Positions 3,340 through 61,255 of a stretch of DNA of 64,000 nucleotides are shown in pieces; position 1 is the stretch's first letter, and each line of letters opens with the position of its first letter. The notes under the pieces are model-generated. The model made no database searches. It had not been told where the DNA came from and saw only the letters and a list, made by a program, of their open reading frames with translations. Made by a program: the position numbers and the translations under genes. Location of the stretch: positions 62,001-126,000 of IMG/VR virus record IMGVR_UViG_3300021057_000274; one strand, 5' to 3'.

Positions 3340-3434
3340 GTGGTGAGAACGCTCTCCGTAGCGCGTTAGGAATTCCGAACTAGCTCTTCAAAAAGTAGTT
3401 TACCTTTGAAAAGAGCTGTGATATATTCTTCCTC

Positions 3435-3527: not shown

Positions 3528-3530
3528 TTT

Positions 3531-3572
3531 AGCGTCGCCCGGTGATCGAGGGTTCGACTCCCTCGCGGCGCT
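3531..3572 (+). ncRNA. tRNA-like minihelix (acceptor stem plus T arm)
   Basis: agcgtcgc/gcggcgct 8 bp; GAGGG-TTCGACT-CCCTC. Confidence 0.6.
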
Positions 3573-9565: not shown

Positions 9566-9643
9566 AGCGGAGTGGAGCAGCCCGGTAGCTCGTTGGCCTC
9601 ATAAGCCAAAGGTCGTTGGTTCGAATCCAACCTCACGCAACCA
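9566..9643 (+). tRNA. tRNA-Met(CAU), initiator-like 1:72 mismatch
   Basis: Cloverleaf, loop CTCATAA, CCA; bulge in acceptor stem. Confidence 0.8.
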
Positions 9644-9762
9644 GCTCAGCACCTTCCCCGAGGTGCAAAGCTAACTAGCGGTGGATCGCTAGCACAATCT
9701 GAAAAATCAGTCGTTTCTCCACCTAAGCACAAACGACCGTCGGACGCTGTAACCGACATTTT

Positions 9763-9836
9763 GCGGGTGTGGTACAATGGTAGCATGCAACCTTGCCAAG
9801 GTTGAGACGAGGGTTCGATTCCCTTCACCCGCTCCA
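9763..9836 (+). tRNA. tRNA-Gly(GCC)
   Basis: Cloverleaf, loop TTGCCAA, U73, CCA. Confidence 0.95.
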
Positions 9837-9899
9837 GTAGGTAGTTGTAAAAGGTCGACCGCCCACATGGGGCGGCGGATTTGAAGGTACCTACGCAGT

Positions 9900-9970
9900 G
9901 CGGGTGTAGCTCAATGGTAGAGCAACTGCCTTCCAAGCAGAAGACGGGGGTCCGATTCCCCTCACCCGCT
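9900..9970 (+). tRNA. tRNA-Gly(UCC), no genomic CCA
   Basis: Cloverleaf, loop CTTCCAA. Confidence 0.9.
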
Positions 9971-9972
9971 CC

Positions 9973-10046
9973 GAGGTTGTCGTCTAAGTGAAGACGCTGG
10001 GGCCCCAAAATCTCCAGAAACGGTGGTTCAAACCCATCCGACCTCG
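9973..10046 (+). ncRNA. tRNA-like RNA with 11-nt anticodon loop
   Basis: gaggttg/cgacctc acceptor, D and T arms; loop GCCCCAAAATC. Confidence 0.6.
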
Positions 10047-10171
10047 CCGATGCTGGAGTTCAAACGCGAAGCCGGTTTCCGGAGCTAGCTCAACCTGAAC
10101 TCGCAGCAGAAGCATCACAGGGTTGGGGGTTTCGCGGACCTCTGTGTTTCAAGAGCTTTGCTGATGCGTCT

Positions 10172-10247
10172 GGGGAAGTAGCTCAGCTGGGAGAGCGCAA
10201 CGTTCGCAACGTTGAGGTCGAGGGTTCGATCCCCTTCTTCTCCACCA
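10172..10247 (+). tRNA. tRNA-Ala(CGC)
   Basis: Cloverleaf, G3-U70, CCA. Confidence 0.95.
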
Positions 10248-10302
10248 CGTTAGTCCCGTAACTAGTACTCGGGACAGTGATCGGTGAGACTCCGATCAAG
10301 TT

Positions 10303-10378
10303 GGGGCCTTAGCTCAGCTGGGAGAGCGTATGCATGGCATGCATAAGGTCAAGGGTTCGATCCCCTTAGGCTCCACCA
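10303..10378 (+). tRNA. tRNA-Ala(GGC)
   Basis: Cloverleaf, G3-U70, loop ATGGCAT. Confidence 0.95.
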
Positions 10379-10506
10379 ATCGCGCACTGAGCGGAGACGC
10401 TTGGGGCGAAAGAGGGTTCAAAGCTGGTGCTGAGAAGTCGGGGTAAGAGCTAACGCCCAACCCGAGAACCTCAGGATGATGCTCGCTTTGATTGCGTTAG
10501 CACCAA

Positions 10507-10581
10507 GCGGAATTAGTTCAGTGGCTAGAACGAGAGCTTCCCAAGCTCAAGACGCGGGTCCGATTCCCGCATTCCGCTCCA
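10507..10581 (+). tRNA. tRNA-Gly(CCC)
   Basis: Cloverleaf, loop TTCCCAA, CCA. Confidence 0.95.
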
Positions 10582-18748: not shown

Positions 18749-18824
18749 GCGCCTGTAGCTCAGTGGAGAGAGTGCCGCGCTACGAACGCGGAGGTCGGGG
18801 GTTCGATCCCCTCCAGGCGTGCCA
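18749..18824 (+). tRNA. tRNA-Arg(ACG)
   Basis: Cloverleaf, CCA. Confidence 0.95.
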
Positions 18825-19028
18825 GAGGTTAAGTCGATGACCTCGATGTAACACCTAGAAGTCGACAACGCCGGTGAATCAGGGCGTGGGGAACCAAGTA
18901 CTGGTTGGATGCTGAAATGAAGCCGCGGTTTTACCCTTAAGCGCGGTGGATGACTGAGAAAGGGCGCTGTAGCCGGTCTAGCATGGGTGTCGAAGTCGAC
19001 TCCCCCTCGATCGGAGCGGTGACAAGAT

Positions 19029-19100
19029 ACGCCCGCCGATGGATTTTCGGCGCCAGGTCTTCTAAACCAGGATAGGAGGGTTCGATTCCTTCCGGGCGTG
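19029..19100 (+). tRNA. tRNA-Arg(UCU), no genomic CCA
   Basis: Loop CTTCTAA; A-A mismatch in anticodon stem. Confidence 0.75.
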
Positions 19101-19103
19101 CCT

Positions 19104-19177
19104 TCCCACATAGCTCAATGGTAGAGCCGCTGGTTGTGAACCAGATTGCCCGGGTCCGATTCCCGGTGTGGGACCCA
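19104..19177 (+). tRNA. tRNA-His(GUG)
   Basis: Loop TTGTGAA, C73, CCA. Confidence 0.9.
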
Positions 19178-19193
19178 GTAGTTGCAGTTCAAT

Positions 19194-19286
19194 TCCTCGG
19201 TACTCTAACGGTAAGAGACCTGGCTGTTAACCAGACGTATCCCGCCACCGAGCGGTATGGAGGTTCGAGTCCTCCCTGAGGAGCCA
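19194..19286 (+). tRNA. tRNA-Asn(GUU) with long variable region
   Basis: Loop CTGTTAA, G73, ~23-nt variable region. Confidence 0.85.
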
Positions 19287-19289
19287 AAT

Positions 19290-19364
19290 GGGTGCGTAGC
19301 TCAGTGGTAGAGCGGGAACCTGTTAAGTTCCGGGTCGAAGGTTTGATTCCTTCCGTGCCCTCCA
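19290..19364 (+). tRNA. tRNA-Asn(GUU)
   Basis: Loop CTGTTAA, CCA. Confidence 0.85.
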
Positions 19365-19375
19365 CAATTCAGTAA

Positions 19376-19441
19376 CCGGGAAGTCCTAGTGACGTATTGC
19401 CGCGGCTGCCATCGTTGGCACGTAGGCTAGGACTTCCCGGT
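19376..19441. repeat. 15-bp perfect inverted repeat hairpin
   Basis: accgggaagtcctag/ctaggacttcccggt. Confidence 0.8.
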
Positions 19442-19455
19442 AGAAGTACAACATT

Positions 19456-19530
19456 GGCTCATTGATGAATGGGTTATCATACTACCCTGTCACGGTAGGT
19501 TAGCGGGTTCGAGTCCCGCATGGGTCGCCA
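19456..19530 (+). tRNA. tRNA-Asp(GUC)
   Basis: Loop CTGTCAC, G73, CCA. Confidence 0.95.
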
Positions 19531-19534
19531 AAAT

Positions 19535-19615
19535 GCGCTTCGGGAGGTTGAATCTCAACAGGTCGGGTCGCTCCCGTCTGTAAAACATGGGTTAAATTCC
19601 TGTGGAAGCGCGCCA
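19535..19615 (+). ncRNA. tRNA-like RNA with non-canonical core
   Basis: gcgcttc/gaagcgc-G-CCA, degenerate T arm, no normal anticodon arm. Confidence 0.55.
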
Positions 19616-19660
19616 AAATTAGAGGCTGACGATTCTGGGCGGCAATCTAGAGTCGGCGGT

Positions 19661-19767
19661 TTGTCGTTGAGGGTGGCTCCTCAGGACCCCGAGTAGGACG
19701 GTGAGATCTTGCCGGATCGAGCCGTTTGAAACGGGTCCTGTCGGTGGTTCGATTCCACCACGACTTC
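19661..19767 (+). ncRNA. tRNA-like RNA with expanded anticodon arm
   Basis: gtcgt/acgac, D-like hairpin, ggaccc/gggtcc enclosing ~45 nt, canonical T arm. Confidence 0.5.
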
Positions 19768-19954
19768 ACTCTAACCCTCTTCATGAAGCTGTGGGTAGAT
19801 CACCCTGCCACAAATCGGGTGATGAGGTCCGATCGCCTTCGTCCGTGGCATGCATGGCGCCAGGGCGATACCCCAGCAGTAACTGCGGCCGTCACCGAAC
19901 TTTATGCGAGAAAGTTCAGCGGTGACGAGGAGGAGGCGAACTGCTCGTTCAGTT

Positions 19955-20029
19955 GTCCCATTCGTCTAGTGGCTAGGACACAACCCTTTCAAGGTTGAGA
20001 ACGGGGATCGAAACCCCGATGGGACACCA
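19955..20029 (+). tRNA. tRNA-Glu(UUC)
   Basis: Loop CTTTCAA, CCA. Confidence 0.95.
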
Positions 20030-20033
20030 CTAT

Positions 20034-20109
20034 CTGGGTGTAGGTCAGCGGCGAGACTGCCTGGTCCGGAGCCAGGAGGCCGTGGGTTCGAGTCCCACCA
20101 CCCAGACCA
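20034..20109 (+). tRNA. tRNA-Pro(CGG), C33
   Basis: C1-G72, A73; loop TCCGGAG. Confidence 0.9.
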
Positions 20110-20149
20110 AAGCGGCCCCCAGCGCCGCTCTAAGCCGAGGCTGGGGCAT

Positions 20150-20225
20150 CGGAGAGTCGCCTAGCGGCTATGGCGCCTGCTTTGGGAGCAGGATACCGTG
20201 GGTTCGAGTCCCACCTTTCCGACCA
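20150..20225 (+). tRNA. tRNA-Pro(UGG)
   Basis: Loop TTTGGGA, CCA. Confidence 0.95.
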
Positions 20226-20235
20226 ACACATCAAT

Positions 20236-20310
20236 CGCTTCTTGGCGGCAAGCTGCCGTGCTCCCACTAGAAGGGAGAGCGAGGAGGTTCACGCCCTCCA
20301 GGAGCGACCA
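20236..20310 (+). tRNA. atypical tRNA, UAG anticodon (Leu-like) without long arm
   Basis: Full cloverleaf plus CCA; loop ACTAGAA; D loop lacks GG; T loop TTCACGC. Confidence 0.55.
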
Positions 20311-20311
20311 C

Positions 20312-20385
20312 GGGTCCGTAGTTCAATGGTAGAATGTTACCTCGACACGGTAGAGACGAAGGTTCGATTCCTTCTGGACCCACCA
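20312..20385 (+). tRNA. tRNA-Val(GAC), C33
   Basis: Loop TCGACAC, CCA. Confidence 0.9.
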
Positions 20386-20391
20386 AAATTT

Positions 20392-20465
20392 GGGCTACAA
20401 GCTTTAAGGTGAAGCATCTGGCTCTTACCCAGAAGAACGGGGATCATTACCCCGGTAGCCCACCA
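20392..20465 (+). tRNA. tRNA-Lys(CUU)
   Basis: Loop CTCTTAC, CCA. Confidence 0.9.
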
Positions 20466-20468
20466 GCA

Positions 20469-20617
20469 TTCGGTAGTGACCTAACGTTCAGGACGAAAGG
20501 AATCGTGCGGTCGCCCTAGTACCAGCTCTGGGTGACTAAACGGAGTCGAGTAGGCCTGCTCGCAAAAGGGATCGGTCAGGGACTGGTACTCCAGAGGTTC
20601 GACTCCTCCTACCGGAC
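20469..20617 (+). ncRNA. 149-nt tRNA-like RNA with expanded D and anticodon arms
   Basis: ttcggtag/ctaccgga, agtaccag/ctggtact, GG-TTCGACT-CC T arm. Confidence 0.55.
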
Positions 20618-20625
20618 TAAACTAG

Positions 20626-20702
20626 GGTTCTTTAGCTCAGATGCGTAGAGCGCCGAGCTTACACCTCGGATGTCGGGGGTTCAAGTCCCTCAGGAACCAC
20701 CA
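20626..20702 (+). tRNA. tRNA-Val(UAC)
   Basis: Loop CTTACAC, CCA. Confidence 0.95.
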
Positions 20703-20704
20703 AT

Positions 20705-20780
20705 GGCGATGTGGTGAACTGGCTATCACGCGGCTCTCATAAGGCTGAGTAGACGGGATCGAAACCCTCCATCGCTACCA
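20705..20780 (+). tRNA. tRNA-Met or Ile2 (CAU)
   Basis: Loop CTCATAA, CCA; identity not resolvable by eye. Confidence 0.9.
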
Positions 20781-20881
20781 TTCTAGGAAGTTGGGACTGC
20801 TCAAGCGGACGGAGTCCGGTAGCCCTCGCGGGGAGACCAATGAGTTGTGGTTCGATTCAACGCCTAGCTTTTATTGCGCTT

Positions 20882-20956
20882 CCCTCATTCGTCTAATGGT
20901 CAGGGCCCGTGCTTGATAGGCGCGTGACGGTGGTTCGATTCCATCATGAGGGACCA
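20882..20956 (+). tRNA. tRNA-Ile(GAU)
   Basis: Loop TTGATAG, CCA. Confidence 0.9.
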
Positions 20957-21046
20957 ACAGCAGCCGAGAAGCAGGCCCGTCGGTCGGTTAGAGAGCCTTC
21001 CGCACGTGCGCTCCGTGAAGCCACGGCAAACGGACTGCTGCATTAT

Positions 21047-21121
21047 CAGGGTGTAGCTCAGTGGGAGAGTGCTACGTCGGGAACGTAGAGGCCGCAGGTT
21101 CAATCCCTGCCACCCTGACCA
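21047..21121 (+). tRNA. tRNA-Pro(GGG), C33
   Basis: C1-G72, A73; loop TCGGGAA. Confidence 0.9.
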
Positions 21122-21224
21122 ATAGCTGGCTTGCAAGTGACGAGAGGTCATCATGCTTCGGAGCGCACGCTGGGGATAAGCTCCCAGCGCAGCGACCTAG
21201 ACGGCAAGCTGGCGGGCCTTATTT

Positions 21225-21295
21225 CAGAGCGTAGCGTAGTGGTAGCGTACCTGGCCTGGAACCAGGAGGTGTTGGTTCGATTCCAGCCGCTCTGA
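21225..21295 (+). tRNA. tRNA-Pro(UGG), C33, no genomic CCA
   Basis: C1-G72, A73; loop CCTGGAA. Confidence 0.85.
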
Positions 21296-21297
21296 CC

Positions 21298-21385
21298 GGG
21301 GGAAGATGTAGGTTCGAATCCTATCCAATGGCCATAAGCCCGTGAGGGTGGCTGGCAGGTAGCTCAACCGGCAGAGCAGCTCCCC
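21298..21385 (+). ncRNA. circularly permuted tRNA-like RNA (T arm before D arm; YrlA-like topology)
   Basis: GTAGG-TTCGAAT-CCTAT precedes TAGCTC-AACCGGCA-GAGC; ends gggga/tcccc pair. Confidence 0.6.
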
Positions 21386-21391
21386 TTTCTG

Positions 21392-21467
21392 GTACATTAG
21401 CTCATGGGGTTAGAGCGCGCGCCCGATAAGCGCGGGGTGGAAGGTTCGAGTCCTTCATGTACCACCA
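21392..21467 (+). tRNA. tRNA-Ile(GAU), C33
   Basis: Loop CCGATAA, CCA. Confidence 0.9.
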
Positions 21468-21600
21468 GACAACACCGTTGCTTCTCACCGAGAGAAGCCA
21501 GCTAGCAAGCGAAGCAGACATTCGTCTAGATCACTGCGACTGGACCCGGAATCCCTCGCGTGGTGGCCGATTGTCGGCTAGGACGGATTCGTTGTCTACT

Positions 21601-21673
21601 GGGGGATGTAGCCGGGGCACAGGAACGCCTTGCAAGCGATCCGCGATGGGTTCAACTCCCATATCCTCCACCA
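21601..21673 (+). tRNA. tRNA-Ala(UGC), atypical D and anticodon stems
   Basis: G3-U70, loop CTTGCAA, CCA. Confidence 0.75.
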
Positions 21674-21774
21674 GATCTTTAGCTCAAACGGGTAAGAGCG
21701 GCGGGACAGATAACCCGCGTCAAGGTGAGCTACGGCGAGCCGAGTGCGGCGACCCCATGCCGTAAGATCTACCA
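21673..21774 (+). ncRNA. tRNA-like RNA with 8-nt anticodon loop and replaced T arm
   Basis: agatctt/aagatct-A-CCA, canonical D arm, gcggg-ACAGATAA-cccgc, tacggc/gccgta arm. Confidence 0.6.
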
Positions 21775-21778
21775 AACT

Positions 21779-21849
21779 GGGCTGTTAGTTTAGCGGGAAA
21801 ACACTGCGCTTGCACCGCGGAATCCGGGGTTCGACTCCCCGACGGTCCA
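21779..21849 (+). tRNA. tRNA-Ala(UGC), no genomic CCA
   Basis: G3-U70, loop CTTGCAC. Confidence 0.9.
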
Positions 21850-21863
21850 CCCACAGATAGGAG

Positions 21864-22052
21864 ATGATCATGTTACCGATCGACGAAGCTGTCAAGCTCA
21901 CCGACATGGATGAGCTGGGTCGTGAGGAGTGGGAGCGTCTCTTCATCTCGACGAACCCGATGTGGAACGTCAGCCCGACCGAGGTCATGAGCGAGGTCAG
22001 AAGGTTGGGTGAACGTCGTAAGGAGCTCCTCAAGGGAGTTCGCTGGTTCTAA
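21864..22052 (+). CDS. small hypothetical protein inside tRNA array
   Basis: AGGAG RBS, 62 aa. Confidence 0.65.
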   Translation: MIMLPIDEAVKLTDMDELGREEWERLFISTNPMWNVSPTEVMSEVRRLGERRKELLKGVRWF

Positions 22053-22057
22053 GCTGT

Positions 22058-22131
22058 TGGGGATTGGTGAAATGGTATCATGTGAGATTCTGACTCTCAA
22101 GTCGTAGGTTCGATTCCTACATCCCCTGCCA
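22058..22131 (+). tRNA. tRNA-Gln(CUG)
   Basis: Loop TTCTGAC, G73, CCA. Confidence 0.95.
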
Positions 22132-22180
22132 CACAACGTCCCTCCACGCCTCTCAACGATGCGCACCCAGGAGGGCCTCT

Positions 22181-22253
22181 GTGCCTCAGACCAATCTGGT
22201 GATGGACCGAGCCTGAAAGCCTCGGAAGCTCGGTTCGATTCCGAGGGGGCACA
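22181..22253 (+). tRNA. tRNA-Phe(GAA), no genomic CCA
   Basis: Loop CTGAAAG; C31-C39 mismatch. Confidence 0.8.
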
Positions 22254-22255
22254 CC

Positions 22256-22348
22256 GGTAGGTGGCGCTGGCGCGCGGCTGGGCCTTATAGACCCGGGAGA
22301 CTGGCCGGACTGGCTGGAACGGCGAGGGTTCGAATCCCCGACCTACCA
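22256..22348 (+). tRNA. tRNA with UAU anticodon (Ile-type) and long variable arm
   Basis: ggtaggt/acctacc-A; loop CTTATAG; ~25-nt variable region. Confidence 0.65.
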
Positions 22349-22453
22349 CCTGTAAGAATCTCCCGAGGTTTGACCCGAGGAGTCGTTAGAGAAGATGATA
22401 TCTCGCTGGCGACGGCCAGAGAACCCCGGGGATGACAGACTCCCGGGACGATT

Positions 22454-22529
22454 GGCCCTTAAGCTAATCAGGTGAAAGCGCCGGTCTGAAAAGCCGGAGA
22501 GTCTGGTTCGATACCAGAAGGGGCCACCA
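22454..22529 (+). tRNA. tRNA-Phe(GAA)
   Basis: Loop CTGAAAA, CCA. Confidence 0.95.
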
Positions 22530-22547
22530 ATACAGGAGGATCGCCAA

Positions 22548-22634
22548 ATGTTCAAAGCTTGGTGGGACAATGGGGCAACGAGAGGCTTTGGGATGCGCTT
22601 ATTCCGGAGCTGGCTTTGTGGTGATTGCTGCTAG
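22548..22634 (+). CDS. 28-aa Trp/Cys-rich peptide
   Basis: AGGAGG RBS; MFKAWWDNGATRGFGMRLFRSWLCGDCC. Confidence 0.45.
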   Translation: MFKAWWDNGATRGFGMRLFRSWLCGDCC

Positions 22635-22653
22635 AGCGATTCCGGACAGACAG

Positions 22654-22731
22654 ATGACATGGAGCTGGTACTTCTTTCTCGGATTTCGCGTACGTGGAAA
22701 GCACTTAATTGATTTTCGCTGGACGAAGTAG
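22654..22731 (+). CDS. 25-aa aromatic-rich peptide
   Basis: MTWSWYFFLGFRVRGKHLIDFRWTK; weak RBS. Confidence 0.35.
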   Translation: MTWSWYFFLGFRVRGKHLIDFRWTK

Positions 22732-22737
22732 ATCTGT

Positions 22738-22810
22738 TGGGGTGAGGATTGGCATCTACGGATGGCTTTGAACCATCTCGGACACGGTTCGATTCCGTGC
22801 GCCCCTGCCA
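22738..22810 (+). tRNA. tRNA-Gln(UUG)
   Basis: Loop CTTTGAA, G73, CCA. Confidence 0.85.
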
Positions 22811-22966
22811 AGGTTGATGGAATGATCATCGACGCCTAGAAGAGCGTGCACGCTTCCTCCAGAGCGGCTAGACGTGAGGAGGATTTTGGATGAAGGGCTA
22901 TCCTCGTTCGATTCGAGGCGTCCTGAACGAAACGGCGCCGAGTCGGTGGAAGCCCGGCGCCTGCAT

Positions 22967-23038
22967 GTCCCGTTGGATTTCCGGGTAGATCGCTGGGACT
23001 TCACCCCAGAGAGACGGGTTCAACTCCCGTACGGGACG
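22967..23038 (+). tRNA. tRNA-Glu(UUC), C33, no genomic CCA
   Basis: Loop ACTTCAC, G73. Confidence 0.85.
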
Positions 23039-23045
23039 CCCCCAC

Positions 23046-23134
23046 GGGGCGCGACGCTGAAGACACCGCCGCGGGCTCAACGCTAGGCCACCGCGGTAAG
23101 ACTTCGGGGCGGACGGTTTCCGCGCGCTCCACCA
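23046..23134 (+). ncRNA. Ala-acceptor tRNA-like RNA resembling a tmRNA TLD with no mRNA domain
   Basis: ggggcgc/gcgctcc with G3-U70, A73, CCA; stemless D region; accgc/gcggt arm. Confidence 0.55.
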
Positions 23135-23151
23135 AATGATACAATAGCTAG

Positions 23152-23907
23152 ATGCTCTACGTAGGAACCAGCGGCTTCCAGTACAAGCACTGGAACGACG
23201 GCGTGTTCTACCCGTCTGGCGTCAAGGATCGCTTGGCGTTTCTCAGCCAACGGATGAACGCTCTCGAGATCAACGCGTCGTTCTACAGCATTCCAAAACC
23301 GGGGAGCGTGCGGCGCTGGAGCGAGAAGCTTCCGCAGAACTTCAAGCTAACGCTCAAGGCTCCTCGGTCGGTCACGCACCGACGTCGCCTCAAGCTGCGG
23401 AGCGACCCGACGATCAAGCAAGGCTGGGACCTCCTCCGCTACTTCTCGGAGGGCGTTCTTCAGATCGCTCCGCAGCAGCGAGGACCTGTTCTCGTGCAGT
23501 TGGAGCACAGATTTAAGATCGATCTCGACCGCTTAGAGGCCGTGCTGGAGTTCTTCAGAGTTCTCCAGCTGACCGTTGCGCTCGAGGTAAGGTGTACCTC
23601 CTGGCTTCGGATGGAGACGCTCAGGCTGCTTCGAGAGTATCGAGGCGCGTTGGTCTCCGCGGATTGGAGGGAGTGCACGGTGCCGATCTACGACACGGGA
23701 AGCTTCGTGTACGTGCGCCGCCACGGGTCGCTCGGACGATACTTCGGGTCATACTCGAGGGCCAAGCTCCAGGCTGATCTCGACGCGGTAGCGCCGTACC
23801 TAGAGCAAGGGCGCGACGTCTACGTCTTCTTCAACAATGACGGCGGCGGCGCGGCCCCGAGGAACGCAGTAAGCATGCTTAAGTTAGCAGATGTCCGATT
23901 CGTCTAG
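23152..23907 (+). CDS. DUF72 (YecE-like) family protein
   Basis: YVGTSGFQY.HW..FYP, EINASFY, KAP..TH, FFNN. Confidence 0.9.
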   Translation: MLYVGTSGFQYKHWNDGVFYPSGVKDRLAFLSQRMNALEINASFYSIPKPGSVRRWSEKLPQNFKLTLKAPRSVTHRRRLKLRSDPTIKQGWDLLRYFSEGVLQIAPQQRGPVLVQLEHRFKIDLDRLEAVLEFFRVLQLTVALEVRCTSWLRMETLRLLREYRGALVSADWRECTVPIYDTGSFVYVRRHGSLGRYFGSYSRAKLQADLDAVAPYLEQGRDVYVFFNNDGGGAAPRNAVSMLKLADVRFV

Positions 23908-23967
23908 TGGTAAGGACGCTAGCCCCTCAAGCTGGAAACCCGGGTTCGATTCCCGGCTCGGACGCCA
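23893..23967 (+). tRNA. tRNA-Glu(CUC), C33
   Basis: Loop CCCTCAA, CCA; overlaps DUF72 stop. Confidence 0.9.
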
Positions 23968-23968
23968 C

Positions 23969-24042
23969 GCGGATTTGGTCTAATGGTATGACGTGAGATC
24001 GCCAGTCTCAAAGCGCGGGTTCGATTCCCGCAATCCGCTCCA
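23969..24042 (+). tRNA. tRNA-Gly(GCC), C33
   Basis: Loop TCGCCAG, U73, CCA. Confidence 0.9.
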
Positions 24043-24117
24043 ACGTTGGTCGCGCGCTTGACCGTTCCGCGAGATAAGAGAGGAGGTCTCTAAAATGAGA
24101 TCCGCCAACGTTTCAAT

Positions 24118-24192
24118 GGTACCCATGGTGTAATGGAAGCACTTCTCCCTGTGAAGGAGGTAGCACCGGATCGATACCGGTTGGGTACCCCA
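24118..24192 (+). tRNA. tRNA-His(GUG) with G-1
   Basis: G-1:C73, loop CTGTGAA, CCA. Confidence 0.95.
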
Positions 24193-24195
24193 TAA

Positions 24196-24270
24196 CTCGC
24201 TGTGGTGAAACGGACATCACGATCCTCTCCTAAAGGGTAAGTCCAGGTTCAATTCCTGGCAGCGAGGCCA
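24196..24270 (+). tRNA. tRNA-Arg(CCU)
   Basis: Loop CTCCTAA, CCA. Confidence 0.95.
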
Positions 24271-24271
24271 T

Positions 24272-24346
24272 CTCCGGTCCAGTGGCATTCTGGCACAGCG
24301 GCTACGAACCGCAGTTGCGGGAGTTCGATTCTCTCACCGGGGTCCA
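24272..24346 (+). tRNA. tRNA-Arg(ACG)
   Basis: Loop CTACGAA, CCA. Confidence 0.8.
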
Positions 24347-24353
24347 AACACAT

Positions 24354-24427
24354 GTCGGTGTGGTCCAATGGCAGGGCGATTGGCTGCAACCCAATAGACG
24401 GGGGTTCGATTCCCTTCACCGACTCCA
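24354..24427 (+). tRNA. tRNA-Cys(GCA)
   Basis: Loop CTGCAAC, U73, CCA. Confidence 0.95.
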
Positions 24428-24630
24428 AAGAAAAAGCGGCGCCCGATGAGTTGGGCGCCGCTGGAGGACCGGCCCTTCGCAGGGAGGGGAGGAGGGGCCG
24501 GTTGGACGAATTTCAATGTATCACTCTCTCCCGAGAAAGTAAACAGATTCTTGCAAGAAGAAAGCACTTCGACCTCAGCCTGGCCGGGCGGTCGAAAAGT
24601 TGGGGTAAGAGCCCTCATGGCTAGGCGCAG

Positions 24631-24704
24631 GCCCGGTTCGTACAGTGGTAGTACGCCTGTTTCGTAAACAGGATGCGGGGGTCCGATTCCCTCACTGGGC
24701 ACCA
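24631..24704 (+). tRNA. tRNA-Thr(CGU)
   Basis: Loop TTCGTAA, CCA. Confidence 0.95.
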
Positions 24705-24705
24705 T

Positions 24706-24780
24706 CTCGCTGTAGTGAAGTGGACATCACGGTCTCCTCCGAAGGGACAAGCCCAGGTTCGATTCCTGGCAGCGGGGCCA
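24706..24780 (+). tRNA. tRNA-Arg(CCG)
   Basis: Loop CTCCGAA, CCA; body nearly identical to Arg(CCU). Confidence 0.95.
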
Positions 24781-24798
24781 AGCTACATAAATAGCCTC

Positions 24799-25125
24799 AT
24801 GAAGCTCTCAGACCTCTTCGAGACCAAGTCCAACTTTTACGTGAAGCTGTGGGGGAAGGTGAACGACGTCCAGATCGACGGCGTCTCCGACCTCGAGGAC
24901 CTCCACGAGAAGATCGGCACAGGCGCTTCGAATCCGATCAAGAAGAAGATTGAGGCGGCGTTCGCCGAGCTGGTCAACGCTAAAGGCGACCACTACGCCG
25001 CCGAGATTCAAGAGGTGATCTGGGAGCACAATGACGAGTTCTTCGGCGTTGACCTCTACGTCAGCACTCCAGACCTTGACGGTGAAGCTCCCCGCACGGT
25101 GCGCGGCGAAGTTCACCAGTCGTGA
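24799..25125 (+). CDS. hypothetical, putative virion internal protein
   Basis: TAAATA 24788; MKLSDLFE. Confidence 0.75.
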   Translation: MKLSDLFETKSNFYVKLWGKVNDVQIDGVSDLEDLHEKIGTGASNPIKKKIEAAFAELVNAKGDHYAAEIQEVIWEHNDEFFGVDLYVSTPDLDGEAPRTVRGEVHQS

Positions 25126-25454
25126 GACTCAACGAGATCTTCTCCTACGAGGACGACGAGGAGCGTCGCATTCAAGCTCGTCGCAAGCGCGACACGTACG
25201 GTGCTCCACTACATCCCAGCAAGGCCAACACCTTCGTCGCCAAGTTGCTCGACAAGCATGACGGCAACCCGAAGGCGGCACTCGCTGAGCTCGTCGACGA
25301 GATCGACGACTACCAGCGGAGCCGCGGCAAGAACGGCCCGATGATGACGCTCTACACCGCGATGCACCAGATGCTCTTGGACTACGTCAAGAACCCAAGC
25401 GCCTTTCAGCGGTTCATGCAAAAGGTTGTCAAGACTCCGCCCGATAAACTTTGA
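25122..25454 (+). CDS. hypothetical, putative virion internal protein
   Basis: GTGA coupling; MRLNEIF. Confidence 0.7.
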   Translation: MRLNEIFSYEDDEERRIQARRKRDTYGAPLHPSKANTFVAKLLDKHDGNPKAALAELVDEIDDYQRSRGKNGPMMTLYTAMHQMLLDYVKNPSAFQRFMQKVVKTPPDKL

Positions 25455-25513
25455 CGGTGAAGCCTTCTCTTGTAAAGAAGCGGAAGTCGGTTCGAATCCG
25501 GCATCGGGCACCA
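25439..25513 (+). tRNA. tRNA-Thr(UGU)
   Basis: Loop CTTGTAA, CCA; overlaps upstream CDS end. Confidence 0.9.
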
Positions 25514-25524
25514 AACTCAACAAC

Positions 25525-25598
25525 GCTCTTGTAGTCCATTGGTAAGATGCATCCTTGGTAAGGATGAGAACAGGGTTCGATTCCCTGCTGGAGCACCA
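25525..25598 (+). tRNA. tRNA-Thr(GGU)
   Basis: Loop TTGGTAA, CCA. Confidence 0.9.
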
Positions 25599-28034: not shown

Positions 28035-28108
28035 GCCTCTGTACGTCAATGGCAGACCACCGCTCCCACACAGCGGGAACTCTGGTTCGATTCCAGACAG
28101 AGGCACCA
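28035..28108 (+). tRNA. tRNA-Val(CAC), C33
   Basis: Loop CCCACAC, CCA. Confidence 0.9.
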
Positions 28109-32488: not shown

Positions 32489-32572
32489 TGAATTCGCGAG
32501 AATTCACACAAAAAGAAGAAATTTTGAGAGAATTTGTGATATAATTCTCTTGTACCACTCACGGAGGCGTGG

Positions 32573-32767
32573 ATGGCCAAGGCGATTCAAGCAGGAGAGC
32601 TGAAGTGCGGCGACGTCATGCTAGTCGGCGACCCCGAGCTTCAAGCCGACGCGACACGCACCGTCCTCACCGCGGAGCAAGTCGAGATGGACGTCACTCA
32701 CGTCGTCTTCACAGACGGCACAGACCAGTGGCTCCCCCGCACCACCGTCGTCGCGATCGAAGCATGA
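32573..32767 (+). CDS. small hypothetical protein
   Basis: GGAGG RBS after TGATATAAT promoter. Confidence 0.7.
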   Translation: MAKAIQAGELKCGDVMLVGDPELQADATRTVLTAEQVEMDVTHVVFTDGTDQWLPRTTVVAIEA

Positions 32768-33312
32768 CCGATACCGCCAACTGGGATCCATACGAGGGCA
32801 GGAGCAACCCCGCCGCAGGCGCCCGCTTCGTTCCGCTCGTTTTCGCCGAGGTGCGCAAGCTTCTCGAGGACGAGATGGGGTTCGAGCGCGTCCAGGTCGC
32901 TAAGACTCGCGAGCTCGTCTGGCAACGCCGCGTCACCGTCAAGGACGTACCGACTCACTACGCCGTTCGTGTCTACTCTACCTTGGAGCCGGACGGAATT
33001 TGCCGCAACAACGGAGCAGACGCTATCCGCGTTTGCCTCGTTGACCTCGAGCAGGGAGAGTGGATCCTCTCCGTCGAGAAGAAGGTTCTCCGCACCAAGA
33101 GCGCGCTCGAGAACCTTCGGCAACGAGCTCGTGACGTGTACGGCTACGTCCTCAACAAGAACCACCGCTGCCCGAAGTGCAACAGGTTGATGGTGGTCAA
33201 GAAGGCGAAGAAGGCCGGCACCACCGCGAGCTACTTCTTCGGTTGTCTCGGTTACTTCCGCGACCCGAAGTGCACCCACTCAACCAGCCTCATCCCGGAG
33301 ACCGCCAAGTGA
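32764..33312 (+). CDS. hypothetical with topoisomerase-type C4 zinc finger
   Basis: CPKC..MVVK....FFGC..Y...C. Confidence 0.75.
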   Translation: MTDTANWDPYEGRSNPAAGARFVPLVFAEVRKLLEDEMGFERVQVAKTRELVWQRRVTVKDVPTHYAVRVYSTLEPDGICRNNGADAIRVCLVDLEQGEWILSVEKKVLRTKSALENLRQRARDVYGYVLNKNHRCPKCNRLMVVKKAKKAGTTASYFFGCLGYFRDPKCTHSTSLIPETAK

Positions 33313-33560
33313 AAGCCGCTATCCATGTTCCGCTGAACACCCAACACGGGCGCTATCCGCGCCTCCAGGTCAACAAGCACGGCGAGGTCGTTCTGGTTAT
33401 CGAAAACCGTGGCTTGCTGTCGACTGAAATTTTGGTCGGCAAGCTGCCCGGATCGAAGTCGACAGTGCCGCTCGGGAAGCGCTTCGACGACTGGGAAGTC
33501 GCTGGTGAGCTAACCGATTACGATGGCGAGGTTACCATCTCGCTCAAGAACGAGCAATGA
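33309..33560 (+). CDS. hypothetical protein
   Basis: GTGA coupling. Confidence 0.6.
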   Translation: MKAAIHVPLNTQHGRYPRLQVNKHGEVVLVIENRGLLSTEILVGKLPGSKSTVPLGKRFDDWEVAGELTDYDGEVTISLKNEQ

Positions 33561-33880
33561 TTTCGATCCTCAAGTTGCTCTTCGTGCTCAGTTGTCTCTA
33601 CCTCGCGTTCAAGTGGGTGCTAAACCGGGGCATTCGAGCGATCATGCGCGAGACACAGCTCTTCATGCTCGTCAATGAGAACGGCGAGATCGACGATCCC
33701 CAAAGCCGGTACATCCAGCGCAAGTACGTCAACGACTACGGCTGGCATGGCAAGTTCTACATCACCGAGTGGGCTCGCGTAGTGCTTCTCCGCGACGGCA
33801 CGTTCAAGATGGCGAGCGACTGGTTTCGCGCTGGCCCAGAGTTCAAGGGATTCAAGTTTCAACCGATCGCTCGCAACTAA
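33557..33880 (+). CDS. hypothetical with N-terminal TM
   Basis: ATGA coupling; hydrophobic N-terminus. Confidence 0.7.
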   Translation: MISILKLLFVLSCLYLAFKWVLNRGIRAIMRETQLFMLVNENGEIDDPQSRYIQRKYVNDYGWHGKFYITEWARVVLLRDGTFKMASDWFRAGPEFKGFKFQPIARN

Positions 33881-33918
33881 ATTTTCTCTAGAGCCGTTGA
33901 AGTGATAAGATAGTCACG

Positions 33919-34368
33919 ATGGCTAGAGAGCAAGTTGAAAATCCCGTAACCTGTGCGCTCGCGGTGATCGTTCCCGGGCGCCGGGTTCTCCTCGCTCACC
34001 CGACAGGCGCCAACTACGTCAACGGCTGGACCCTTCCGAAGGGAATCAAGGAGCCGAGCGAGACCGAAGCTGAGGCCGCCGCTCGAGAGTGCTTCGAAGA
34101 AACTGGTCTAGACTTAAGAGAGCGTGCAGGCAAGCTGCGAGATCACGGTCGCTTCAAGTACCAGCCCCACAAGGACTATCATCTCTTTTCGGTTCACCTC
34201 GCTGACGAGGTCCCTCTCGCGCGCTTGAAGTGTGAGTCGATGTTCATCTCGAACATGATCTTCTACCCCGAGGTAGATGCCTTCACCTACATTCGCCTCG
34301 ATCAAGCTCACATGCTCTTGTCGAGGAGACAGGGAAAGATCTGGGAAGCGGTTTGGAACCAGCTCTAG
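33919..34368 (+). CDS. NUDIX hydrolase
   Basis: PKG..E..E....AARECFEETG Nudix box. Confidence 0.92.
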   Translation: MAREQVENPVTCALAVIVPGRRVLLAHPTGANYVNGWTLPKGIKEPSETEAEAAARECFEETGLDLRERAGKLRDHGRFKYQPHKDYHLFSVHLADEVPLARLKCESMFISNMIFYPEVDAFTYIRLDQAHMLLSRRQGKIWEAVWNQL

Positions 34369-34403
34369 GTATACAAGTACACCTTCTCATGTTACAATGC
34401 ACT

Positions 34404-34668
34404 AGCTTCGGTCTCGATCCGTCGCGCCCGCAAGGGTGAGGAAAGTCGGGACTGCACAGAGTGGGTGTCCAAGCTCTAGGGCAGGCGAAAGCCGTAAACC
34501 GGCCTCACGGTCGGCAACCGTAACTTGGCCCGCAGCAACCTAAACAGGAGATGATGACTCTACTCGACGAGTCTCCGGGTTGGGGCACGATCGCGAGAGC
34601 GTCGGGCGGCCGTAACCGCCAGTCGAATGACGGAATAAAACAGAATCCCGCTTACGGGGACCGAAGCT
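34404..34668 (+). ncRNA. rnpB: RNase P RNA, compact (reduced S domain)
   Basis: P1 agcttcggtctc/gggaccgaagct; GAGGAAAGTC and ACAGAATCCCGCTTA form P4. Confidence 0.9.
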
Positions 34669-34684
34669 GTTTTGTGGGGGAACG

Positions 34685-35773
34685 ATGACCGAAGAAAAAG
34701 TTAGCATCAAGATCTTAGGGGCTGGACGAGTTGGAATCGCAGTCTCGCTGATGCTCGAGGAGCTTAACGCGCGGCGAGATCTAGGATGGCGGATCTCACT
34801 CGTTGACAACAACCCCGACTTAGGTCTCGTGCGTGATCTAAGAGACGTCAAAGTCATCACTGACGAGATCAAGAGCGCAACAACCGTCATCTGTTGTCTC
34901 CCGGTGTCAGTGATGAGGGCGGTGAAGCCTGGCATGATCTGTGCGAACCACGGAGTCAATTACATCGACATCACCGAGGATGTCGATCTGAGCTTGATGC
35001 ATCGGACGTACGGCGCGGTCGCCGAGAGCAACGGCTCCGTTCTCATGCCCCAGTGCGGATTAGCGCCAGGGATCATCAACATCGCGGCTGGCTCGATCTA
35101 TCGTCGCTTCGCCGACGGTGAGGAAAACGGGTGTCTTGACCTCTTTCTCAGGGTAGGTGCCCTGCCTCTCTTTCCGACCAATTCGCTCAAGTACGGGCTC
35201 ACTTGGAGCTTGGAGGGACTGATCAACGAGTACATCAATCCCTGTGACGCGATCGAGGGGTGGAAGCGAGTACGCGTTCCAGCGCTCGAGGATCTAGAAG
35301 AGCTGATGATCGCTGGAGTTCACCTCGAGGCGTTCTCAACCTCAGGTGGACTGGGATCACTCGCCCAATCTCTGAAGGGTAAGGTTCGCAACCTCAATTA
35401 CAAGTCGGTCAGGTATCCCGGTCATCACCACTTGATCAAGTTCATGCTCCAAGAGCTCGCTCTATCTAGAAAGAAGATCGAGGGCCTGCTGAGGAACACC
35501 CTCCCTCAGGTGAGCGATGACGTCGTTTACATCTCCGTCATCGGGAAGGGCGTCGTCAACGGCCAAGCTAAGCACGAGGTGTGGAGCACCGCCGTGACTG
35601 GAAAGCGGGGGTTGACGGCTCTCCAGTTGACCACGGCGCTCGGCGCCTCGGCGATGGTCGAAAACATTCACGTTAACGGCTTCTCTAGGAAGGGGTTGGT
35701 TCTCCAAGAGGACCTTGACTTGACCGCTGTCATCTTCGGATCAGACATCAACAACCAATGGAACGTCTTTTAA
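34685..35773 (+). CDS. saccharopine dehydrogenase-family oxidoreductase
   Basis: LGAGRVG Rossmann motif, NYIDITE, QCGLAPG, YKSVRYPGH. Confidence 0.88.
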   Translation: MTEEKVSIKILGAGRVGIAVSLMLEELNARRDLGWRISLVDNNPDLGLVRDLRDVKVITDEIKSATTVICCLPVSVMRAVKPGMICANHGVNYIDITEDVDLSLMHRTYGAVAESNGSVLMPQCGLAPGIINIAAGSIYRRFADGEENGCLDLFLRVGALPLFPTNSLKYGLTWSLEGLINEYINPCDAIEGWKRVRVPALEDLEELMIAGVHLEAFSTSGGLGSLAQSLKGKVRNLNYKSVRYPGHHHLIKFMLQELALSRKKIEGLLRNTLPQVSDDVVYISVIGKGVVNGQAKHEVWSTAVTGKRGLTALQLTTALGASAMVENIHVNGFSRKGLVLQEDLDLTAVIFGSDINNQWNVF

Positions 35774-36168
35774 CTCGTGAAGAGTTCAAGGTGCTCGTCT
35801 TCAAGCGAGACAAGCACACCTGCGTCGTGCCTAAGTGCGGGCGTCCTGCGGTTGACGCTCACCACATCCTCGACCGCAAGCTCTTTAAGGACGGCGGATA
35901 CTACCTTGCTAACGGAGCCTCGCTCTGTGGAGCGTGCCACTGGGACGCTGAGACGGGAGTGATCACTGTCGAGCAAGTTCGTGAGTACTCGAAGATCGAG
36001 ATCGTCATCCTTCCGCCCGGCTTCAATCCTAGATTCACCTACGATAAGTGGGGCAACAGCTACCACGCGGTCGACCACGGCACGAAAGCCATGAAGGGGC
36101 CGCTCTTTCATGACGCTGGAGTTCAAAAGATCTTGAAGCAAACGGGACGAATTCGGTACTTCTTTTAG
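35758..36168 (+). CDS. HNH endonuclease-like protein
   Basis: RDKHTC..C....AHHI....LC..CH. Confidence 0.75.
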   Translation: MERLLTREEFKVLVFKRDKHTCVVPKCGRPAVDAHHILDRKLFKDGGYYLANGASLCGACHWDAETGVITVEQVREYSKIEIVILPPGFNPRFTYDKWGNSYHAVDHGTKAMKGPLFHDAGVQKILKQTGRIRYFF

Positions 36169-36233
36169 TGTACATCGCTAAATTTACATGATATGATCGG
36201 CACCGTGAGTCAACAACGTCAGAGGGAGATCTC

Positions 36234-36887
36234 ATGAGCTTCGCGACAGCTGCAAACGTTTTCGCTCAAAACCGCGTCTTACGCAACACGTTCTTTCTGC
36301 TCGCTCTCAGCTTCATCACCACGATCGCTGGGACGATCGGCGGCATCATGGCAGGGTTGCCAGCCTGGGGTAGCGAGAACCCCGTCACCTTCGCGGTGAT
36401 CAGCCTGGTCGGCGCCATCGGCTTGATCTTCCTGACCCACGCGTTTCGAGACGACGCGTTGGGAGTTCCTCTCTTCCTCGCCTTCTCTCTCTTTGAGGGT
36501 GGCGCGATCTGCGGGTTGATCAATCAGGTCTGGACCAACCCAGGCGGCCCGATGATCATCGCGAACGCGTTCGCTGGCACCGCGCTCGTCACCGTCGGCT
36601 GTTCGATCTACGCGATGGTCACCAAGCGCGACTTCAGCGTCTTCGGCGGCTTTCTCTTCGGAAGCTTGTTAGCGCTTCTCGGCCTGATGGTCCTCGCGCT
36701 AGTCTTTGGCTTCTATGGCACGTGGATCTCTTACCTCGCGATTCCGCTCTTCTCGTTCTACCTGATCTGGGACGTGCAACGAGTCGTCGACGGTGGCGAA
36801 GACAACTACATCTCAGCCGCGATCGGCATCTACCTAGACGTCCTGAACATCTTCTTGCACATGCTCAACATCGGCAAGGATGATTGA
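36234..36887 (+). CDS. Bax inhibitor-1/YccA family membrane protein
   Basis: 7 TM, NYISAAIGIYLDVLNIF. Confidence 0.9.
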   Translation: MSFATAANVFAQNRVLRNTFFLLALSFITTIAGTIGGIMAGLPAWGSENPVTFAVISLVGAIGLIFLTHAFRDDALGVPLFLAFSLFEGGAICGLINQVWTNPGGPMIIANAFAGTALVTVGCSIYAMVTKRDFSVFGGFLFGSLLALLGLMVLALVFGFYGTWISYLAIPLFSFYLIWDVQRVVDGGEDNYISAAIGIYLDVLNIFLHMLNIGKDD

Positions 36888-37022
36888 CACCTCTCCTAAG
36901 ATCGGTGAGCTCGCCTTCGGTTGCTTTTCAATCGGAGTCGGGCTCGGCTTCGGCACGCCGTTGGGGTGGTGGCGATTCCGATCGCGATCGGGCTCTTTTT
37001 CATCCTTCCTGCGAGGTAACCA

Positions 37023-37526
37023 ATAGACAAGAGACACCGCATCAATCGAGAGATCACCGCACCGCAAGTTAGAGTCGTCTCCGCCTCTGGCGACCAGATG
37101 GGCGTCATGACGGTCTTCGAAGCTCTCACTCTAGCTGAAGAGAAAAATCTTGACCTAGTCGAGTTCGCCCCCACCGCGGTGCCGCCCGTTTGCAAGATGA
37201 TCGACTACGGGAAGTTCCTTTACCAGCTCCAAAAGAGCACCCAACGTCAGAAGACGCCTGAGCTGAAGGAGATTCAGCTACGTCCGTCGGTCGACGAGGG
37301 AGATTACAAGATCAAGGTGCGAAAGATCATCGAGTTTCTCACTGACGGTCACAAGGTAAAGGTCGCTCTCAGGTTCAAGGGGCGCGAGATCACTCATCGA
37401 GAGATCGGCGACGCTTTGCTCACGCGGCTTCAAGATGACACCAAGGCCCACGGCAACGTCGAGAGCTATCCCAAGCTCGAGGGCAAGCAGATGATCATGG
37501 TCCTCTCACCCCAGAAAAAACACTGA
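37023..37526 (+). CDS. infC: translation initiation factor IF-3, non-canonical ATA start
   Basis: INREI..VRV, DLVE..P..PPVCK..DYGKF, KVKV..RFKGRE; GAGGT RBS before ATA. Confidence 0.92.
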   Translation: MDKRHRINREITAPQVRVVSASGDQMGVMTVFEALTLAEEKNLDLVEFAPTAVPPVCKMIDYGKFLYQLQKSTQRQKTPELKEIQLRPSVDEGDYKIKVRKIIEFLTDGHKVKVALRFKGREITHREIGDALLTRLQDDTKAHGNVESYPKLEGKQMIMVLSPQKKH

Positions 37527-40361: not shown

Positions 40362-40748
40362 ATGCAAGAAATTTCTGGAGGTGTCGGGCTTCACCTGCTG
40401 TTAGACCTACACGGCGTCAAGCCTGAGCTTCTGATCGACCTCGAGTCGATCAAGAAGATCTTGGTAGAAGCTTCGAGAGCTACTGGAGCTACAGTTCTGA
40501 GCTGCGAGGGAAGATCCTTCGGCGAGGGACTGGGAGTCACGGCGATGACGATTCTCTCAGAGAGCCATTGCTCGATTCACACGTGGCCAGAGCTAGGTAA
40601 GGCTATGCTCGACATGTTCACGTGCGGAGCATGCAATCCTCGACGCAGCATTCCTGTCTTTGATCGTTACTTCAAGCCAGAGTACATGAACGTCGATCTC
40701 CTTCACCGCGGCTCAACCATAGGCCTCGTTCCAAATTATGACTTCTAA
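40362..40748 (+). CDS. speD: S-adenosylmethionine decarboxylase proenzyme
   Basis: GLHLLLDL; LSESH.SIHTWPE; DMFTCG. Confidence 0.95.
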   Translation: MQEISGGVGLHLLLDLHGVKPELLIDLESIKKILVEASRATGATVLSCEGRSFGEGLGVTAMTILSESHCSIHTWPELGKAMLDMFTCGACNPRRSIPVFDRYFKPEYMNVDLLHRGSTIGLVPNYDF

Positions 40749-61180: not shown

Positions 61181-61255
61181 GCTCCCTTAGCTCAGCGGCA
61201 GAGTACGGGACTCTAAATCCTAGGGTCGTGGGTTCGAATCCCACAGGGAGCACCA
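61181..61255 (+). tRNA. amber-suppressor tRNA (anticodon CUA)
   Basis: Cloverleaf, loop CTCTAAA, A73, CCA; own TGATATAAT promoter. Confidence 0.88.

Follow-up and report, generated by a model that had tools for sequence, protein, structure and literature searches.

Genomic context of the locus

The window analysed here comprises 64,000 nucleotides, corresponding to bases 62001–126000 of the 389,331-bp IMG/VR record IMGVR_UViG_3300021057_000274. Within it, a 316-nt intergenic gap separates genes encoding a NUDIX hydrolase and a saccharopine-dehydrogenase-like protein, and this gap holds a compact homolog of bacterial class A RNase P RNA (Table 1). A default Rfam scan of the window reported 35 tRNAs and an abiF motif but no RNase P. 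A permissive scan, however, gave a full-length match (model positions 1–367) to RF00010 (RNaseP_bact_a) at window positions 34406–34670 (+), with a score of 71.7 bits and E = 1e-21; in the whole record this was the only match (E = 1.3e-22). The score lies below the curated gathering score of 100 bits, and so default annotation misses it. Open reading frames overlapping the RNA (45 aa on the + strand and 139 aa on the − strand) were considered and rejected as the explanation of the locus: the minus-strand frame is antisense to the downstream gene, and the covariance model match explains the sequence.

The record is rated 98% complete by CheckV and is labeled "provirus", a label that derives from the trimming of about 6 kb from a 395,730-bp soil metagenome contig that is identical over the RNA. 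Several features identify it as a jumbo myophage. It has a uniform GC content of 55–61% and 48 tRNA genes, and it encodes a large terminase, a baseplate wedge protein (phrog_10646, E = 1e-257), virion proteins and a phage-type DNA polymerase (PHROG phrog_262). Its nearest cultured kin, at 36–44% identity in the baseplate protein, are Ralstonia phage RsoM2USA, Xanthomonas phages XacN1 and Xoo-sp13, Stenotrophomonas phages and the Escherichia PBECO4/121Q group, which suggests a proteobacterial host. The RNA lies about 96 kb inside the record, and two separate assemblies of soil runs, which may however be the source samples, each span window positions 32500–37500 in a single 96-kb contig with no differences. 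Closer relatives of this phage were not found: a megablast search of 4 kb against deposited phages returned nothing, DNA polymerase relatives in IMG/VR are only about 33% identical, and the downstream gene has no relatives there.

Table 1. Features of the RNase P RNA locus. Window positions count from the first base of the 64,000-nt window; RNA positions count from 34404 = 1.
Feature	Window position	Strand	RNA position	Description
Phage tRNA arrays	9570–10581, 18749–25598 and 28035–28108	+		40 tRNA genes; presumed substrates
NUDIX hydrolase gene	33919–34368	+		Upstream neighbor
Sigma-70-type promoter	34370–34398	+		−35 TATACA (34370–34375), 17-nt spacer, extended −10 TG (34390–34391), TACAAT (34393–34398); predicted start about 34404–34405
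Compact class A-like RNase P RNA	34404–34668	+	1–265	265 nt from P1 5′ end to P1 3′ end
P1	34404–34416 with 34655 and 34657–34668	+	1–13 with 252, 254–265	13 bp
P2	34418–34423 with 34629–34634	+	15–20 with 226–231	6 bp
P3	34425–34438	+	22–26 with 31–35	5 bp, GCAA loop
Conserved GAGGAAAGUC block and P4 5′ strand	34438–34451; pairs with 34646–34653	+	40–42, 44–48 with 243–250	AAG, bulged U at 34446 (U43), CGGGA at 34447–34451; 3′ strand UCCCG-CUU
P5	34452–34455 with 34532–34535	+	49–52 with 129–132	CUGC/GCAG
P6 pseudoknot (proposed)	34459–34462 with 34562–34565	+	56–59 with 159–162	GAGU in J5/7; proposed partner ACUC in the P16/P17 loop
Specificity-domain remnant	34463–34531	+		69 nt
P7		+		GGG/CCC, followed by a 3-nt bulge
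5-bp helix	34469–34473 with 34524–34528	+		CCAAG/CUUGG
P9	34484–34493	+		GGC-GAAA-GCC
Lineage-specific hairpin	34499–34514	+		6 bp, UCAC loop
P15, P16 and L15	34539–34584	+	P15 136–138 with 179–181; P16 144–149 with 168–173; L15 174–177	P15 3 bp; P16 6 bp; GGU at 34578–34580 (GGGU 34577–34580)
CCGGGUUGGGG	34575–34585	+		Aligned to CGGGUA of the model
P18 site	34588–34604 and 34605–34620	+	185–201 and 202–217	Two tandem hairpins; GAGA loop and 6-nt loop
J18/2 (..GUCGAAUG), P2 3′ strand, J2/4 and ACAGAAUCCCGCUUA block	34621–34653	+		J2/4 shortened; ACAGAAUCCCGCUUA block holds the P4 3′ strand
Saccharopine-dehydrogenase-like gene	34685–35773	+		Downstream neighbor

Anatomy and expression signals of the RNA

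The helix map was derived from the covariance model alignment with manual checking, and all 79 proposed pairs are canonical. The span given in a preliminary description of the locus, based on sequence alone, coincides exactly with the two ends of P1, and its account of a short P3 and a variant P4 is likewise confirmed. The catalytic domain retains P1–P5, P15/P16 and the L15 GGU motif, the site that pairs with the tRNA 3′-CCA in class A RNAs. The core motifs GAGGAAAGUC, the bulged U in P4, GCAA in J5/15, GGU in L15, GAAUG in J18/2 and ACAGAA are intact, and J18/2 and the ACAGAAUCCCGCUUA block are near consensus.

By contrast, the specificity (S) domain is cut from about 150 nt to 69 nt. P8 and P10–P14 are absent, and the 105 model positions covering P10–P14 are represented by 25 nt; the modules that typically bind the tRNA elbow in class A RNAs are therefore missing. 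The preliminary description proposed that the RNA lacks most of the S domain; this is correct, although P7 and P9 remain. The latter aligns with the GNRA-capped P9 of better preserved relatives, while the hairpin with a UCAC loop is found in no relative. Thermodynamic folding alone does not settle the pairing inside the remnant, and the whole-RNA fold z-score is only −1.87.

The promoter listed in Table 1 is the only sigma-70-like site within window positions 34000–35000 (shuffles give a mean of 0.3) and places the expected transcription start at the first base of P1. The P1 3′ strand is followed by GUUUUGU, but no hairpin-type terminator was scored on the + strand. Only two soil DNA runs hold the locus and no RNA-seq run holding it was listed; expression is thus inferred.

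Relatives in phage tRNA arrays

To identify relatives, we scanned for the P4 5′ and 3′ blocks at compact spacing, using a pattern with 27 specified bases that left two P4 positions free on each strand. IMG/VR held 4 true matches besides the record of the window itself, and 45 species' genomes and 82 metagenome contigs also matched. Six of the ten loci from a first, looser pattern scan gave no RNase P match and are taken as chance hits, in line with a rough estimate of the number expected from that pattern. About 31 loci (24 distinct sequences) have three or more tRNA genes within 2.5 kb. These include a 44.8-kb phage with direct terminal repeats, a terminase and more than 20 tRNAs, and a 674-kb contig in which 45 tRNAs, GOLLD and manA RNAs and a compact RNase P RNA lie within 15 kb; another locus (L175) holds a permuted tmRNA. 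GOLLD and tmRNA are different RNA families with different functions that share the same genomic niche. Further IMG/VR scans at other spacings found four intermediate-size RNAs, all in arrays, such that all 8 compact or intermediate-size matches in IMG/VR lie in arrays. Of nine full-size RNAs, only two are in arrays; the other seven are on short contigs without tRNAs and are probably host rnpB beside prophages. All the phage-array RNAs that were scored fall below the Rfam cut-off, at 53.7–94 bits.

The nearest distinct relative of the window RNA, L174, lies on a 154-kb contig and scores 119.6 bits against a covariance model built from the window RNA (R1), versus 348.7 bits for the window RNA itself. 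It shares the reduced S domain and the two-hairpin P18 site, but no flanking genes are in common. A search with a sub-lineage-specific 5′ motif found nothing, and blastn of the RNA against deposited phages gave one chance-level hit. None of five cultured relatives of this phage group, including XacN1, has a detectable RNase P RNA; the gene is therefore an accessory acquisition and not a clade-wide trait.

Comparison across the relatives indicates two routes to a small RNA. Most array-associated RNAs delete P18 and keep an S domain of about 104 nt, with P8, P9 and short P10–P12. The window RNA, L174 and two further RNAs (L013 and L176) instead keep structure at the P18 site and shrink the S domain to about 70–76 nt, with the window RNA at the small end. 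The same layout of two tandem hairpins, with unrelated sequence, occurs in L174 and L013, with changes on both sides in 4 of 6 and 5 of 5 pairs.

Selection on structure

Model R1, built from the window RNA and our nested structure, aligned 18 distinct array-associated RNAs. Standard pairs are formed in 93.5% of cells, against 57.3% in shuffles (0 of 500 as high) and 32–44% when partners are slid, and 52 of 65 pairs change on both sides. P1 (12 of 13 pairs), P2 (6 of 6), P3, P5, P7, the 5-bp helix, P9, P15 (3 of 3) and P16 (5 of 6) all covary, with 91–100% of cells paired in P1, P2, P3, P5, P15 and P16. This alignment was fitted to the structure of the model, which inflates pairing for the nested helices. 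P4, however, was not part of the fitted model, and the search pattern did not require complementarity there. Even so, its two variable pairs are complementary in 16/16 and 15/16 sequences (0 and 2 of 10,000 shuffles as good), in 24/24 and 23/24 array-associated RNAs, and in 79/79 and 72/79 of the others. Support for P6 is limited to one covarying pair within a sub-lineage, where GAGU/ACUC exchanges with GAGC/GCUC and 8 of 8 sequences are compatible; an alignment-free complementarity test was not significant.

Candidate substrates and protein partner

Turning to the presumed substrates, 42 of the 48 phage tRNA genes encode 3′-CCA, 33 of 48 have T at −1, and ten neighboring tRNA pairs are 1–16 nt apart. 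CCA and U(−1) are the substrate features read by the catalytic domain, through L15 GGU and the J5/15 adenosine, respectively (PMC6582537). This fits an enzyme that has lost its elbow-binding modules, although host RNase P would favor the same features. Across other phage loci, nearly all the RNAs keep GGU whether or not the neighboring tRNAs encode CCA; a test for co-adaptation was thus uninformative, and the CCA match in this phage is consistent with such recognition but not diagnostic.

No RnpA (PF00825) is encoded in the window or anywhere in the record, and no HARP-type protein-only RNase P (PF08745) was found in the record. Five other viral records also lack RnpA, though most of these are fragments. 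The RNA regions that typically contact RnpA in class A holoenzymes, namely P3, J18/2, J2/4 and the P15 region, are retained with near-consensus sequence. Use of the host protein is the simplest inference.

Comparison with known RNase P RNAs

Relative to class A RNAs such as E. coli M1 RNA, the window RNA is 265 nt instead of about 350–400 nt. It lacks P8 and P10–P14, including the two conserved S-domain regions that bind the tRNA elbow, its P3 is cut to 5 bp, its J2/4 is 12 nt shorter, and two tandem hairpins stand in place of the single P18 hairpin whose GNRA loop docks on P8. Compact, sub-threshold class A RNAs are not new in themselves. Lui et al. 2021 (PMC8172020) lowered Rfam thresholds to find RNase P RNAs of CPR/Patescibacteria that lack P13/P14/P16/P17 and, rarely, P12 or P18. 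Our own scans found 254–273-nt forms as the sole RNase P RNA in three CPR genomes, one Elusimicrobia genome and one 0.7-Mb gammaproteobacterial genome. The CPR RNAs are housekeeping genes of cells that presumably also encode RnpA, and about two-thirds of them lack the CCA-binding motif, whereas the window RNA keeps it and lies in a phage with 48 tRNA genes.

The nearest natural analog in architecture is the archaeal type T RNase P RNA of Pyrobaculum/Thermoproteaceae, which lacks most of the S domain and is reported to be active (Lai et al. 2010, cited in PMC7191817). Type T RNA is, however, a cellular gene of archaeal descent that works with archaeal protein subunits; the resemblance is architectural only, as the best match of the window RNA within the RNase P clan is the bacterial class A model. 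Mycoplasma fermentans RNase P RNA and engineered minimal RNAs (Siegel et al. 1996, cited in PMC8172020) are likewise small bacterial RNAs that lack P12 yet remain active, showing that the peripheral helices are dispensable for catalysis; the former is class B and cellular, and the latter are artificial.

What appears to be new is the phage location. Lui et al. reported that their megaphages showed "only tRNAs and a tmRNA" (PMC8172020), and a 2020 survey of huge phages and a 2026 review of jumbo phages do not mention RNase P. No report of phage-encoded forms, including the mini versions in giant phages mentioned in the preliminary description, was found in the open-access literature searched, although this does not prove that none has been published. 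Rfam 15 has no dedicated family, since no family reached its gathering score here.

Proposed function and alternatives

The feature is near certainly an RNase P RNA homolog and near certainly encoded by a jumbo phage. In the absence of activity or expression data, we propose as the most likely, though not secure, explanation that it is a working catalytic subunit of RNase P, of bacterial class A descent, that has lost most of its S domain. It would be transcribed from its own sigma-70-type promoter, fold into the catalytic domain supported by sequence and covariation, assemble with RnpA of the host, which is unknown, and cleave the 5′ leaders of the 48 phage pre-tRNAs. Substrate recognition should then rest on catalytic-domain contacts with the 3′-CCA and U(−1), both of which the phage tRNA genes supply. 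Because several tRNAs are only 1–16 nt apart, one cut at a downstream 5′ end would possibly leave the upstream tRNA close to its mature CCA end. Isolated catalytic domains of bacterial RNase P RNA also appear to be catalytically active, in line with this proposal. On the other hand, XacN1, which is probably unusually tRNA-rich, has no detectable RNase P RNA, and a large tRNA array may therefore not require one.

Other explanations are less likely. The RNA could be active without host RnpA, either alone or with an unrecognized phage protein that replaces RnpA and perhaps the lost S domain: no RnpA is encoded here or in the five other viral records, most neighboring small ORFs have no family match, and the tandem hairpins at the P18 site, found in three RNAs of unrelated sequence, could be a protein-binding platform. 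This seems unlikely given that the RnpA-contacting regions are kept, that no flanking protein gene is shared with L174, that in most relatives the RNA is flanked only by tRNAs, and that bacterial RNase P RNAs generally need the protein in vivo. A decaying relic of a captured cellular rnpB is similarly doubtful. The sub-threshold score, the largely lost S domain, the lack of close relatives and the absence from cultured relatives would fit such a relic, but the pairs are canonical, the core motifs are intact, a promoter is aligned to P1, the deletions are clean removals of peripheral helices as in functional CPR RNAs (PMC8172020), and family-wide compensatory changes show selection on structure.

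Somewhat less likely still is a decoy or regulator that sequesters host RnpA, or competes with host RNase P RNA, and so redirects or damps host tRNA maturation. Loss of the S domain would weaken tRNA binding while leaving the protein-binding regions intact, the promoter is strong and stand-alone, and absence from cultured relatives indicates that the RNA is dispensable for this phage type. Yet residues needed for catalysis and substrate docking but not for protein binding are conserved, including the P4 bulged U with its flanking adenosines, the L15 GGU and the J5/15 A; P4 covaries, as does one P6 pair within a sub-lineage; the family is embedded in tRNA arrays, which points to processing them; and a phage with 48 tRNA genes gains nothing from inhibiting RNase P. 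Least likely is a cellular origin, as the host flank of a provirus or a chimeric assembly. The "provirus" label and the occurrence of compact class A RNAs as the sole RNase P RNA of some cellular genomes could suggest this, but only about 6 kb of the contig was trimmed, the RNA lies about 96 kb inside the record between phage-type auxiliary genes and on the same strand as the tRNA arrays, GC is uniform, structural and replication genes lie on both sides, and both assemblies span the locus without a difference.

Implications

A broader possibility, about as likely as not, is that phage-encoded RNase P ribozymes are a widespread, so far undescribed class of viral accessory RNA. On this view they are size-reduced class A derivatives of about 240–300 nt, in or near tRNA arrays of phages from 45 kb to more than 670 kb, that went unnoticed because they all score below the Rfam threshold. 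They would give phages partial autonomy in tRNA maturation and represent repeated natural minimization of the ribozyme by at least two routes, deletion of P18 or stripping of the S domain, with the window RNA an S-domain-stripped bacterial counterpart of archaeal type T. Default Rfam thresholds miss these genes in phage and CPR genomes.

The RNA offers natural experiments in how small a bacterial RNase P RNA can be, and bears on the old question of how much of tRNA recognition must come from the S domain and how much from catalytic-domain contacts with CCA and N(−1). RNase P RNA is regarded as a cellular housekeeping ribozyme, and surveys of huge phages list tRNAs, tmRNAs, ribosomal proteins and translation factors, but not RNase P. 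A phage-borne copy would extend the known reach of viral takeover of translation to tRNA maturation.

Features of the tRNA arrays and of the RNA locus

The window contains a tRNA with the anticodon CUA, an amber suppressor that ARAGORN labels tRNA-Pyl, which has an Rfam tRNA score of 65.4 bits and an encoded CCA. In a crude gene call under code 11, about 20% of genes end in TAG and coding density is 92%; there is therefore no sign of genome-wide TAG recoding. Within the main tRNA array, a match to the abiF RNA motif (RF03085) lies between tRNA-Gln and tRNA-Phe and scores 48 bits, above its cut-off of 37. Additionally, a 93-nt tRNA-Asn(GUU) is positioned directly upstream of a normal 75-nt tRNA-Asn(GUU), and its extra length suggests an insertion or intron.

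Turning to the RNase P RNA itself, the P1 3' strand is followed directly by a U-run (GUUUUGU in the window), an arrangement also present at L174, the locus of the nearest distinct relative of the window RNA, and at loci L195 and L215. Possibly, the closing helix doubles as a terminator, an arrangement that the hairpin-based scan does not score. The auxiliary genes just downstream of the RNA encode a saccharopine-dehydrogenase-like enzyme and an AdoMet decarboxylase, both of which are polyamine-related, together with a Bax1-I membrane protein and a full-length translation initiation factor IF3.

Coordinates of features in the window and at two other loci
Sequence	Position	Strand	Feature
Window	19194-19286	+	tRNA-Asn(GUU), 93 nt
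Window	22140-22176	+	abiF RNA motif (RF03085)
Window	34669-34675	+	U-run after the P1 3' strand
Window	34685-35773, 37098-37526 and 40362-40748	+	Auxiliary genes downstream of the RNA
Window	61181-61255	+	tRNA with anticodon CUA
L208 (contig Ga0308157_10000029, 673,773 bp)	1995-2276, 3371-3553 and 10065-10491	-	Compact RNase P RNA, GOLLD RNA and manA RNA (listed without regard to position)
L175	4336-4620 and 7274-7580	-	Permuted tmRNA and compact RNase P RNA (listed without regard to position)

Compact RNase P RNAs in other phage arrays and in cellular genomes

Across 31 phage-array loci, the base after GGU in L15 tracks the tRNA genes. In 7 of 8 loci with CGGGUU, most neighbouring tRNAs encode CCA (L174, with 2 of 4, is a tie), whereas in loci with CGGGUA the tRNAs mostly lack CCA, a majority encoding it in only 2 of 14 loci. 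As shared ancestry was not controlled for, this association may only reflect lineage.

Compact class A RNAs also occur in cellular genomes. Among the genome contigs L102–L146 and the genomes G001–G005, class A RNase P RNAs of 254-273 nt are the only RNase P RNA in genomes of Shapirobacteria, Woesebacteria, Parcubacteria and Elusimicrobia, and in a 0.7-Mb 'Gammaproteobacteria' genome. Several matches are labelled Iainarchaeum (DPANN archaea), which may be mis-binned.

In two other arrays, a compact RNase P RNA is accompanied by further accessory RNAs. One 15-kb stretch of the 674-kb contig L208 holds 45 tRNAs, a compact RNase P RNA that lacks P18, a GOLLD RNA (166 bits) and a manA RNA. At L175, a 30-tRNA locus, a permuted tmRNA (120 bits) lies about 3 kb from a compact RNase P RNA. 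Finally, a phage of only 45 kb (L017/L201; IMGVR_UViG_3300031576_000105, 44,773 bp, with direct terminal repeats) that has a terminase and more than 20 tRNAs carries a 252-nt RNase P RNA. The trait is therefore not confined to jumbo phages.
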